Source: Macrostomum hystrix
Lineage: Eukaryota; Animalia; Platyhelminthes
Assembly (NCBI GenBank): GCA_950097015.1
Contig: CATNEN010000039.1
Span: forward strand, 19,158,001 to 19,222,000
Direction of reading: 5' to 3'
DNA length: 64,000 nt
Below the pieces are notes generated by a model. That model made no database searches and was not told where the DNA came from. It saw nothing but the letters and a program-made list of their open reading frames with translations. Below, piece by piece: positions 1-2,331 of the stretch. Both the position numbers and the translations under genes were made by a program. How positions within the stretch are numbered: the first letter of the stretch is position 1; each line of letters opens with the position of its first letter.

Positions 1-1497
1 ATTCGGCTCTGAAGCTGCTGGTTCGAGTCTGTGTCCGTGTGTTCAATGAGGCTAAGACTGGACCACTCCATACCAGTTGGCGCCTCCTTCGTGCCATCAA
101 AGTCACAGAGCAGCTGGCCGAAACTGCGGTGCTTCACGATCATCTTCAGCTCATCTGTGAATTCGTCAAAAATACTTTCTCGTTCTTCCATACCTAGGTC
201 TAACTGACGAATGACAAAAGTGGGCGCCGCGTAGCCGCAAATGATGTAGGCATGGCTGTAGCCATCCGGCAACGGCTTATCTAATCGGACGAGGTAGGCG
301 GGCATTTGTTTTGCGTAGCCGGAACTGCCAAACACCAGGCAAAGGTCTGACTTTCCATCGGTAATCTTGTTACATTCTGGAAAAAGCTGGCTGGGATATG
401 CCTCAAATTCCGCCCGGCCGCGCAAAATTGACTTGTTCAACAACAGAAAGTACTTTGGGATGACCAGAATTCGGCTGGGGTCAATTTTAAAACTGCTGCA
501 TTTCAATTGGTCGTCTATTTGTTCTCCGATTACTCTAGCCAACCTCGGCAGGATGCTACTGAGGAATCCCGTTACCAACTGCCAGGCAAAGCTTTCTCCA
601 CGACTGCTGAAGCTACTTGGCTTCGGTTCTGCAGTTGATTGAATTCAATTCAAACTTGTACGCTATTGTTAACGTAAAAATAACCATAATTAATTCAAAA
701 CTTTAATAATCTGAATTCCTACCTTCAGTCAGGGCATTGAGAAAGTTTTCTACACTCTGACTTTCCAGATCTACGAAGTGAAGCATTCGTAACGCTCGTT
801 TACCAGCGTGTAAAAGATTGATGCTCCTGCCTCTGAAGTTCTTAACGACATAGGCTCTACGATTTTTCTGCCTATCGCACTGAAAATAGCAATAAATTTA
901 ATATTAATATTTAATATGGTCTCGAGTGTGCTCCCGAATAAGTAAGAGCGTAAATAGCCGTTGGCTTTTTAAATCCTTTACAGACTACTAAAATGACAGA
1001 AAGGAACAGTAGTAAAAGAAAATGAAGTCACATAGATCAGCTCACCCAGTGCATGACACGCCTGTAGAGATGACACAAGTACTTTAACTTTGGAGGCTCG
1101 TTAAAAATGACAACTAAACGAATGTTGGAATAGCTGTCTTTTGGCAACAGCAGCTCATCCCAGTCACCTGGACTTTCTGGCCATGTTTTAGTTGTCGTTG
1201 CGAAACTACTTATGCGCATTAGATCTTCAAGCTTGGACTCGATCGCACAGCCGCTTTGTTGGGATCCGTACCCGACTAGGACAATCTCTGGACTCGCTGA
1301 ATCGAAGGCAAAGGATTGTTGATTCAGAATATATGATAACTTTGATTGGCTAAAGAGTGCTTCAGAAACGTCATACAGGTACAGAAGCGCACACGTTCAT
1401 AATGACAAACTTTACCTGACGCATCTAGAGCTGGTATACTGGGCTGGACAAGCATCGCAACCTCCCCTGTCAAACTGCCATTTGACAATGCAGCCAT
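1..1497 (-). CDS. Soluble STING-domain protein with N-terminal alpha/beta (possibly TIR-like) domain; 4 exons (1497-1416, 1296-1046, 879-723, 628-<1), 3' end outside window
   Basis: GT-AG introns with consistent phases (1,0,1) give an uninterrupted frame. Exon 4 reads SRGESFAWQLVTGFLSSILPRLARVI...IPKYFLLL...YIICGYAAPTFVIRQL...GMEERESIFDEFTDELKMIV, collinear with STING motifs [20 protein letters not shown] / RLYILLP / CVLEYATPLQTL / [21 protein letters not shown]. Confidence 0.75.
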
Positions 1498-2331
1498 TGC
1501 AGAATCTCAATTAGTCGCTAAAGCCTGTATGAAAAGTTTTAACCCGGTTGCTAAGGGCCAAAGTCTCGATTTGTTCTTTTCCAGATTCAGGACGGCCAGT
1601 GTTACTTTAATCGATGGTTTGTCTGGAAACTCCGGAGCTATTCCATGGATTTCCCGTGGTGGAGCCTCGAAGTGAATCTCGCCGTAATTTCTATAAATAT
1701 AAAATCTTTGTTTCAAGAATAGGATGCTGATGTTGCTAAACTGGAACTCAAACAGCTTTTGTATCGATTATAATATTTACTATTGTTTATTACAATGACA
1801 CCCATCAGTCATCAGAGCGGAGAGAGATACTTTTAAAAAGGCTTGTGAACGGTGTGAGCACCTCGGTCTTGAGCACTAAGTGCAAGCACCAAATCTTAAT
1901 AGCCGAACCATGTCAAGCGCAGACTGCAGAAAGGGGAGAGCACTATAGGACCCTCGGTCTCACCTTCAAAGTTCAACTGTAGACCTCCAGTTTATGCAGG
2001 TTTCGTGGCGTCTCACAGACAGACATAAAGAGCGCAATATTCTAATATAATGATGACGACAGTTGCTATATTAAGCTTTGCTGTACAACAAAAAAAACAA
2101 AGCCCATGCACAGCTTGCCAGGGTGAACCGTACATTTCATTGTTCTTCATTGCACTAAATTGCATTGTACACAGAGCTCTTTCTACCTTCTGCTTTTATA
2201 GTGCCTTATTAAAACATCTACTTGACGATGTAAAAGTGGCTGCATTTCGTTGCTTTTTGCATGCTATGCAGTAGGCTAGAATCGCGCCAAGTTTTGCAGA
2301 TCTGTGGCACATTGGCCTAAATAATTTCATC

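Follow-up and report, generated by a model that had tools for sequence, protein, structure and literature searches.

A transcribed Macrostomum hystrix gene predicted to encode a soluble protein with two unlike STING folds

Described STING systems and the flatworm locus

The canonical STING nucleotide pocket lies between two identical chains, and the canonical animal protein (TMEM173; human 4KSY/6NT5, Nematostella 5CFL, coral 8EFM) is a homodimer with a four-helix membrane domain. Most animals are reported to have STING, with gaps noted, e.g., in nematodes (PMC8204762), and a cGLR other than Mab21-like proteins is said to be missing from most flatworms (Li et al., PMC9980059). Bacterial CBASS TIR-STINGs (Sphingobacterium SfSTING, 7UN8; Flavobacteriaceae, 6WT4) provide the template in which ligand binding leads to oligomerization and this to effector activation (PMC9402430, PMC8204762). 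Among mollusc TIR-STINGs (Crassostrea gigas, 6WT7), some oyster gene models have two annotated STING domains and as many TIR domains (PMC11103948). Finally, protist blSTINGs are diverged proteins in whose hosts no CD-NTase was found, and for which sensing of exogenous nucleotides has been proposed (Culbertson & Levin 2023, PMC10732462).

The window analyzed here, a 64,000-nt stretch of contig C39 of the macrostomid flatworm Macrostomum hystrix, holds the first exons of a gene that is of interest in that flatworms are generally regarded as devoid of the STING pathway. Its 747-aa product has the order N, A, M, B, where A and B are predicted STING ligand-binding folds and N and M are alpha/beta modules (Table 1). 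Canonical animal STING shares this ligand-binding fold (Z of 16 to 17 for A and ∼10 for B), which is nearer to animal than to bacterial STINGs; the signature of helix alpha1, xxAWxxxxG[FY]LxxxLPxL, is present in A, and the Y167 aromatic residue is retained in A and B. Unlike canonical animal STING, however, the gene lies below Pfam detection, has lost the E260 and T263 equivalents in A, has no membrane domain, and carries two unlike ligand-binding domains per chain, which ends ∼35 residues beyond the last strand of B, too short a stretch for a vertebrate-type C-terminal signaling tail. The layout looks like a doubled unit of alpha/beta module plus STING, and its order matches that annotated for the oyster double TIR-STING genes. 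The mollusc protein is likewise soluble, with no transmembrane (TM) segment and an alpha/beta module before the STING fold; domain B has 6WT7 among its structural matches (Z 9.0), and oysters and this flatworm are both lophotrochozoans. However, the oyster modules are recognizable TIR domains, whereas N and M match no TIR model, and sequence identity between oyster STING and this protein is only ∼12 to 19%. In bacterial CBASS TIR-STINGs a soluble STING is fused to an effector-like module, as here, but these proteins are structurally much less similar (domain B, Z 5.1 to 6.3) and differ in having one STING domain, an operon, and a cognate CD-NTase. The family can also be likened to blSTINGs, as diverged eukaryotic STINGs in hosts without a detected CD-NTase, although a blSTING is a TM-STING whose domain is of bacterial type, whereas the flatworm proteins are soluble, tandem, and of animal type.

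A spliced seven-exon gene on the minus strand

The locus, within a 21-Mb contig, is an intact, transcribed seven-exon gene, with four exons in the window and exon 4 crossing the window start. The coding sequence (2,244 nt) has no internal stops, and all six introns are of the GT..AG type. An intron-less transcript contig from run X2 (2,394 nt, 0 mismatches) skips all six predicted introns, and the contigs from X3 and X4 are likewise intron-less with the same GT..AG joints; spliced transcripts thus joined occur in three samples, whose kind is unrecorded and which are treated as RNA solely because their contigs lack introns. A sequence-only reading of the window had proposed four minus-strand exons spliced in frame, and their joints match the X2/X3/X4 contigs at the exact bases. 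The 628 bp that it assigned to exon 4 proved to be the in-window part of a 959-bp exon with 319 open codons, which extends beyond window base 1 by 331 bp, as far as C39:19157670. It thus described the first ∼370 residues and missed exons 5 to 7 together with the second STING domain. The M. lignano protein P0001 aligns exon by exon with exons 2 and 4 to 7 (its residues 18 to 79 with exon 2). As also anticipated in that reading, the protein is soluble: a TM-like segment is absent from every exon (maximum Kyte-Doolittle 19-residue mean, 1.35), the N terminus has no hydrophobic core, and there is no signal peptide.

Table 1. Exons, domains, and motifs of the gene (window positions, unless given on contig C39)
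Feature	Position	Strand	Remarks
Exon 1	1416..1564	(-)	5′ UTR 1498-1564 + first 27 codons + 1 base; X2 contig; donor GTAAAG
Exon 1 CDS	1416-1497	(-)	ATG 1497-1495; transcript start near 1564
Exon 2	1046..1296	(-)	Contig joint; acceptor ATTCAG, donor GTGAGC; first half of N module (EIVLVGYGS...IRLVVIFN...)
Exon 3	723..879	(-)	Contig joint; acceptor TTTCAG, donor GTAGGA; second half of N module (RRAYVVKNF...LHFVDL...VENFLNALTE)
Exon 4, in-window part	1..628	(-)	Contig piece over whole exon, 0 mismatches
Exon 5	C39:19157347-19157563	(-)	Outside window
Exon 6	C39:19157150-19157257	(-)	Outside window
Exon 7	C39:19155967-19156436	(-)	Outside window; includes stop codon, at C39:19155967-69
Predicted STING ligand-binding-domain fold A	1..605	(-)	Exon-4 residues 8-223; last 15 residues just beyond window
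Helix alpha1 signature of A, GESFAWQLVTGFLSSILPRL	540..599	(-)	Corresponds to human STING A156-L175
Putative lid hairpin of A, GYAKQMPAY	294..320	(-)	Tyr, Lys/Arg, Tyr family-invariant (alignment column counts)
YAAP	222..233	(-)	Putative counterpart of human STING Y261-A-T263-P264; preceding E260 is Gly here
N	Exons 1-3		Alpha/beta module
A	Exon 4		Predicted STING ligand-binding fold
M	End of exon 4 + exon 5		Second alpha/beta module
B	Helix alpha1 in exon 6, remainder in exon 7		Second, very different predicted STING ligand-binding fold

Two predicted STING folds and the modules beside them

By structure prediction, exon 4 adopts the fold of a STING ligand-binding domain. The AF2 model has a pLDDT of 73 to 96 per 10-residue block over residues 11 to 180, with lower values towards residue 223, and Foldseek returned at least 203 matches at an E value of ≤1e-3 (best, 2.6e-8), of which all those listed were STING. 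Domain A superposed on solved STING ligand-binding domains across its whole length (Z 16 to 17.4), with the duck protein (9whf) reaching a Z of 17.4 and an rmsd of 2.4 Å over 169 residues in VIA-align; the match to human STING covers residues 153 to 343, and the structural search found 238 chains at a Z of ≥8, followed by a sharp drop. All searches were run per exon or on natural M. lignano proteins. A paralog profile found 76 sequences in the PDB (best E, 3e-4), with STING accounting for all of the 60 listed, and domain A of 8 of the 12 paralogs matched Pfam STING_LBD (PF15009) with a best E value of 1e-5, below the gathering threshold of 27 bits. The PF15009 scan of the 220-Mb genome in six frames matched at two places only, both family loci, the better at 25.6 bits. 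Exons 4 and 7 of this gene gave no Pfam STING match at an E value of ≤10, and phmmer with single exons found nothing in the PDB. The paralog-profile and model results bear out the STING call, and more strongly than the exon-4 letters by themselves allowed; the peptides quoted for it (AWQLVTGFLSSILPRL, KYFLLL, IICGYAAP, and MEERESIFDEFTDELKMIV) all occur in the exon-4 translation.

Helix alpha1 of domain A, in which SFAWQLVTGFLSSILPRL is present, keeps W161, G166, P173, and L175 of human STING, with Y167 replaced by F; its W, F, and P are invariant across 16 family sequences. Through this helix the family profile matches STING chains and nothing else (best E, 3e-4), and the profile of four full-length proteins against the PDB likewise retrieved STING only, via alpha1 of A, and no TIR. 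HMMER paired the YAAP block weakly with 'EYATP'/'EYAS' of coral STINGs.

Exon 7, together with a first helix in exon 6, is predicted to form a second STING fold. The exon-7 model (AF2; pLDDT 81, pTM 0.76) had 84 Foldseek matches at an E value of ≤1e-3, those listed being all STING, and aligned with residues 173 to 337 of human STING at a Z of 10.4 in VIA-align. In an unbiased search of 48,161 PDB representatives, ranks 1 to 15 were all STING (Z 9.9 to 5.1); animal and choanoflagellate STINGs scored 8.3 to 9.9, bacterial ones 5.1 to 6.3, and the best non-STING 4.6. Helix alpha1 of B carries a putative, weaker version of the signature, AYAMVANIWHGFAQHLL. No paralog was found with this helix and the rest of B in one exon or separated by a stop-free in-frame intron; every candidate contains a stop, so that B was folded without alpha1. 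AF2 predicted both folds from alignments of little depth, with 12 and 16 rows. Sequence similarity between A and B was not significant by BLASTP or hhalign (E 0.09), and the tandem-STING claim thus rests on structure.

The identity of the flanking modules is a different matter. Strand-like and helix-like stretches alternate in exons 2 and 3, which had suggested a TIR-like N-terminal module, an assignment that the searches did not support. Neither exon has a Pfam match; TIR and TIR_2 (PF01582, PF13676) had no match at an E value of ≤10 in the exons or in P0001 to P0006, PADLOC had none in this gene or its relatives, and none of the 38 TIR_2 and 18 TIR six-frame matches in the genome fell at family loci. 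Alignment with the TIR domains of this genome by hhalign gave an E value of 0.39 for N and, for M, an E value of 0.014 at a probability of 3% in the expected strand register. The N modules of the paralogs are too divergent to find one another, and the portion of M inside the exon-4 model has a pLDDT of 35 to 65. An ESM Atlas feature search with both modules provided no usable lead. The profile of the first half of M produced only chance coiled-coil matches in the PDB (NEMO, E > 0.1), which were discarded.

Several family-conserved positions fall where a pocket would be expected. The Y167 position is an invariant Phe in both A and B, and a basic-plus-aromatic pair is invariant in both hairpins, the lid equivalences being drawn by sequence position only; on this ground GYAKQMPAY would be the counterpart of the STING lid (R238/Y240 region). 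In the family columns of domain B, alpha1 has Asn for S162 and Gly-Phe for G166-Y167, the hairpin has an invariant Arg and after it Tyr/Phe, and the E260 position is almost always Glu. In this gene, Gly occupies the E260 position of A and Glu that of B; the T263 position of A holds Ala. Since the polar contacts of E260 and T263 are replaced by Gly and Ala in domain A, half of the pocket may be degenerate. Prediction of an A+B complex (M. lignano P0002, residues 152 to 390 with 396 to 582) scored 0.00 with ESMFold2, run without a family alignment and with the partner fold uncertain, and weighs neither for nor against pairing.

Family, pathway partners, and candidate functions

The search for paralogs that the sequence-only reading had suggested recovered at least 12 family members in the M. 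hystrix genome, which share the A...B layout and keep A and B consistently distinct. Consistently with the lineage specificity proposed there, relatives outside this genome were found only in Macrostomum lignano, and the full HMMER scan, across 1.84 billion representatives, yielded 3 relatives and no more; among the sequences searched, the family is specific to Macrostomum. Homologous-protein searches with exon 4 and with exon 7, in a length window that left out full-length relatives, found none, and we found no report of this family in the literature on STING in flatworms. Neither a canonical STING nor a cGLR was detected in the genome. The suggested search for cGAS-like/CD-NTase genes brought up the MAB21L1 ortholog only, as the single PF03281 (Mab-21) match (E 2.8e-174 to 5EOG), and SMODS had no match in six-frame searches, which score best candidates only and which diverged CD-NTase enzymes could escape. 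The failure to detect a cGLR agrees with Li et al. (PMC9980059). The prok_STING model had no genome match, but its control search also matched nowhere, so that this negative carries little weight.

Overall, the locus is probably best explained as a transcribed gene for a soluble double-STING protein, one of at least 12 paralogs, with cis-paired sensing through a single pocket. Its product likely functions as a cytosolic single-chain nucleotide sensor, for which we infer ligand, cis pairing, and output. Domains A and B, unlike each other but on one polypeptide, would come together around a single asymmetric pocket that takes a cyclic (di)nucleotide, ligand binding would cause closure or oligomerization, and the N and M modules might relay the signal, by analogy with TIR domains in TIR-STING proteins. 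A more specific version, in which the asymmetric pocket would detect a nucleotide that is non-symmetric or foreign (bacterial or viral) without cGLRs and signal via two diverged TIR-derived modules, is offered tentatively and may well not hold in all its parts.

Other readings account for some of these observations. The locus could encode a TIR-STING-type receptor with a single STING domain, in which exons 1 to 3 are a true TIR that acts as NADase or adaptor once exon 4 binds a cyclic dinucleotide. The STING fold of exon 4, which bears out part of what had first been proposed, the alternation in exons 2 and 3, and the register of M against the TIRs of its own genome speak for such a protein, but the latter alignment is of the low significance given above, the second STING fold on the transcript makes the model incomplete, and the TIR part found no sequence support: no profile match in the gene or its relatives, none at family loci, an insignificant score for N, and N modules that cannot find each other. 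We regard it as somewhat unlikely. The STING folds might instead be kept as a scaffold or for another ligand, nucleotide sensing having been lost and the cGLR side gone. The undetected cGLR and SMODS, the loss of the E260 and T263 equivalents in domain A of this gene, and a divergence so extreme that the gene has no Pfam match would fit; however, the best-conserved positions of the family are pocket-like (the Phe equivalent to Y167 and the basic and aromatic pair in both hairpins), and no host synthase is needed for cyclic dinucleotides of bacterial or dietary origin, as has been suggested for blSTINGs (PMC10732462), all of which makes this unlikely in our judgment.

Pairing could also occur between chains, like with like (A:A and B:B) or as A:B, so that ligand would drive polymers resembling bacterial TIR-STING filaments. 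STING domains are reported to dimerize and form filaments in all studied systems (PMC9402430), and in this gene A ends ∼180 residues before B starts, a stretch that takes in module M; yet in the P0002-type paralogs the gap is only ∼20 residues, which suits cis pairing, and the consistent difference between A and B across the family is as expected of fixed partners, so that we consider between-chain pairing unlikely. Only the absence of annotation-level matches would favor a pseudogene, a mis-joined model, or contaminant DNA, a reading to which we assign almost no weight: it is contradicted by spliced transcripts in three samples, an intact 747-codon frame with six canonical introns, the position inside a 21-Mb contig, and an exon structure conserved with M. 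lignano.

Cis-paired sensing by a soluble double-STING protein thus stands as the preferred explanation, and macrostomid flatworms, at least, retained the STING fold, in a form that is soluble, doubled, spread over about a dozen genes, and invisible to standard domain searches. Alongside the double TIR-STING models of oysters, the family bears on the age of a protein with a duplicated module-STING unit in lophotrochozoans. Transgenesis is established in Macrostomum lignano, a tractable model (PMC7053086), which makes the question testable. If the cis pairing is true, these proteins would represent, in natural single-chain form, a receptor that is normally a symmetric homodimer and would offer a handle on the evolution of STING ligand asymmetry and on the role of STING without cGAS, membranes, or interferon. 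If the single-chain reading is true, flatworms of this lineage would have an animal STING pathway that is soluble and needs neither membranes nor TBK1 nor cGAS, with about a dozen receptors differing in their pockets.

Gene structure and transcription

The sequence-only reading had placed a gene of four minus-strand exons at positions 1 to 1497 of the window, which spans G000:C39:19158001-19222000. These four exons are present and in frame, but the gene does not end there: the frame of exon 4 has no stop between bases 626 and 1, continues past the window edge, comprises 319 codons in total when the preceding DNA is included, and closes at a GTAAGC donor, past which lie exons 5 to 7. The coding sequence spans 2244 nt (747 codons plus stop), and all six introns are GT..AG. 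No exon encodes a membrane-like segment, in agreement with the solubility initially claimed for the protein, and the gene product has no signal peptide.

For the 4.2-kb locus (L030), four sequencing runs of one study contain ∼55% of its words, in line with its exonic fraction. A 2394-nt contig from one of them (X2) lies over all seven exons with no mismatches, and at each of its six joints the plus strand shows CT..AC, i.e., GT..AG on the gene strand. Because window positions equal L030 positions minus 2300, the block edges match the predicted exon boundaries to the base. Contigs from runs X3 and X4 contain identical joints, so that intron-less contigs of three runs uphold the junctions originally proposed. 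The kind of these runs is not on record; they were taken as RNA because their contigs lack introns. Independent support came from the Macrostomum lignano protein P0001, which matches exons 2, 4, 5, 6, and 7, exon by exon.

Features of the gene locus and of other places in the assembly (G000; C, contig; L, piece of the same genome)
Feature	Position	Strand	Remarks
Gene exons 1-7		minus	82 (coding part), 251, 157, 959, 217, 108, 470 nt (gene model)
Stop codon of the gene	C39:19155967-69		
X2 contig blocks	L030 184-736, 1450-1557, 1647-1863, 1970-2928, 3023-3179, 3346-3596, 3716-3864		mismatch-free
Intron 6 repeats	L030:815-1399 = G000:C39:19156515-19157099		outside window
Deeply covered segment	L030:1-210 = G000:C39:19155701-19155910		right after 3′ UTR, outside window
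Divergent neighbor, 197-aa coiled-coil ORF at its start	window:2332-2925	plus	835 bp upstream of the gene's start codon
Non-LTR retrotransposon remnant, GC-rich	L002:3000-6900 = G000:C39:19151000-19154900	plus	1-5 kb downstream of gene 3′ end, outside window
Family clusters	C2 8.97-9.11 Mb; C39 4.23-4.25 Mb		
Single family copies	C38; C7		
TIR_2 gene cluster	C38:17955229-17995979		spacing ∼7-13 kb
MAB21L1 orthologue, single exon	L029:1153-2508 = G000:C24:4852865-4854220	minus	E 2.8e-174 to human 5EOG

Intron 6 (713 bp) is full of tandem repeats (a 61-bp unit ×4.2 at 97% identity, plus 46-bp and 16-bp variants), and some X3 RNA contigs break off or jump within it. In the segment behind the 3′ UTR, the RNA-like runs show a summed contig depth of 1100-1800, versus ∼9 for the gene (100-200x); the contigs there are numerous, short, and mismatched, suggesting a repeat that is dispersed and highly transcribed. 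The 197-aa ORF has weak sub-threshold Pfam matches only (ADIP, Filament, Rab11-FIP3) and probably belongs, as first exon, to a larger gene that shares the intergenic promoter region. Farther downstream, the retrotransposon remnant matches PF14529 (endonuclease-reverse-transcriptase, E 3.8e-18) and, in an RNase H ORF, PF00075 (E 2.5e-9); numerous long ORFs overlap on both strands.

Domains A and B

All searches used single exons or natural database proteins as queries. Single exons had no match in Pfam, PDB sequences, or a length-limited protein search. A profile of 12 paralog copies of domain A (exon 4), A1, matched 76 PDB sequences at E<=10; every one of the 60 listed is a STING, headed by three from corals (E 3e-4 to 9e-4). 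The aligned stretch passes through helix alpha1 (family consensus EafAWqlatgFLrlilPnLe). Pfam STING_LBD singly matched 8 of the 12 copies (best E 1e-5) and did not match the gene's own exon 4. The AlphaFold2 model of exon 4 built with A1 (pLDDT 73-96 per 10-residue block, residues 11-180) retrieved at least 203 Foldseek matches at E<=1e-3, with only STING among those listed, in the order oyster (2.6e-8), human, duck, anemone, and coral. VIA-align superposed it on duck STING 9whf (Z 17.4, rmsd 2.4 Å, 169 residues) and on human STING over the whole domain (model 8-223 on residues 153-343); 238 chains scored Z>=8 and just one further Z>=5. The predicted structure of domain A is thus that of a STING ligand-binding domain, as first proposed, and the four alignment blocks then drawn by eye are collinear with the superposition.

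Sequence methods did not detect the likeness of domain B to STING. By eye, exon 7 offers YCFVIPSSGHYPD like LYILLPLDCGVPD, FEIP like LEYATP, and FRVVYWDD like CRLIAYQE. Modeled alone (155 aa, 16-row alignment A3; pLDDT 81, pTM 0.76), it retrieved 84 Foldseek matches at E<=1e-3, those listed being all STING, and VIA-align placed model residues 5-155 on human STING 173-337 (Z 10.4 over 134-138 residues). A Foldseek-independent search of 48,161 representatives ranked STINGs 1 to 15, with animal and choanoflagellate proteins at 8.3-9.9, bacterial ones at 5.1-6.3, and the best non-STING at 4.6. The first helix, absent from this model, is encoded by exon 6 (LLLMSAAYAMVANIWHGFAQHLLD), with family-invariant Asn...Gly-Phe at the S162...G166-Y167 positions of STING. 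As modeled, domain B is a second STING fold.

The pocket register was set by the helix alpha1 alignment (profile and superposition) and the YA[AS]P block. In domain A, W161, G166 (Thr/Ser in some paralogs), P173, A262, and P264 are retained; the domain has an invariant Phe for Y167, Gln/Asn for S162, Gly for E260 (Asp in the C2 cluster), and Ala for T263 (Ser in the C2 cluster). Ahead of the central strand, Tyr, Lys/Arg, and Tyr are invariant in G-Y-x-[KR]-x-x-x-x-Y. In domain B, Glu is nearly invariant at the position of E260, and the hairpin has an invariant Arg followed by Tyr/Phe. We infer lid equivalences from sequence position, not from residue-level superposition. The most conserved family positions thus appear from the alignments to coincide with ligand-holding places of STING, and to differ between A and B.

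Alpha/beta modules and the gene family

Modules N (exons 1-3) and M (exon 4 end and exon 5) read as alternating strands and helices, and the exon-4 model shows the first 70 residues of M, with low confidence, as beta-alpha-beta-alpha. The N-terminal module had been likened to TIR. Neither module, in the gene or the M. lignano proteins, matched TIR, TIR_2, any other Pfam family, or PADLOC at E<=10, and none of the 38 TIR_2 and 18 TIR six-frame matches in the genome lies at family loci. Against a profile of ten own-genome TIR domains, a profile of M aligned in the expected strand register (E 0.014, probability 3%) and N gave E 0.39; N versus M gave E 0.03, and N modules of paralogs did not detect each other by sequence. 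M may therefore be TIR-like; for N, such a likeness is not supported. On C38, no fewer than five near-identical genes in tandem, each bearing a strong TIR_2 domain (86 bits), form an expanded TIR family unrelated to the STING-like one.

The family is expanded and, as the sequence-only reading anticipated, lineage-restricted. The genome (220 Mb, 42 contigs) harbors at least 11 paralogous copies of exon 4 (32-44% identity) and 11 of exon 7, each exon-7-like piece shortly downstream of an exon-4-like one. Among 1.84 billion representative proteins, a full HMMER scan retrieved just three relatives; they and their close kin are all M. lignano proteins, unnamed or misnamed. The orthologues are 47-63% identical, which points to a macrostomid flatworm other than M. 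lignano as the source of this genome. The Pfam STING model, run over six frames of the whole genome, matched only two places, both belonging to the family (best score 25.6 bits, versus a cut-off of 27), which argues against a canonical STING elsewhere in the assembly. The C39 4.23-Mb paralog (L014:519-965) and its M. lignano orthologue P0003 (residues 1-127) carry an additional alpha/beta module ahead of N, as well as a 30-40-residue insertion within domain A; domain content is therefore variable in the family.

Candidate pocket and ligand

The gene is expressed, and its soluble product contains two unlike STING folds, both preceded by an alpha/beta module of their own. The ligand cleft of canonical STING is formed by a homodimer. 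Here, A and B would pair inside one chain to make that cleft, yielding a single asymmetric nucleotide pocket. Two observations speak for pairing in cis: P0002-type paralogs have just ∼20 residues between A and B, and the two domains differ consistently across the family. By analogy with TIR-STING, which forms filaments and has NADase activity (PMC9402430, PMC8204762), N and M would carry the output. The layout is not unprecedented.

SMODS was not found in the genome, where the only gene with a Mab-21 domain is orthologous to the developmental MAB21L1. This orthologue carries a Gly/Gln-rich N-terminal extension and adjoins a tandem array of ∼69-bp units, with the repeated peptide GSEYSLFWDQSIHCFGIRVFTVL in two frames. 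With no host synthase detected, a foreign ligand is possible, an idea previously put forward for the blSTINGs of protists (PMC10732462). Literature searches retrieved no paper on flatworm STING. This putative nucleotide sensor is of interest for the phylum in which it occurs, because it is soluble and escapes standard domain searches, and for a possible single-chain pocket.
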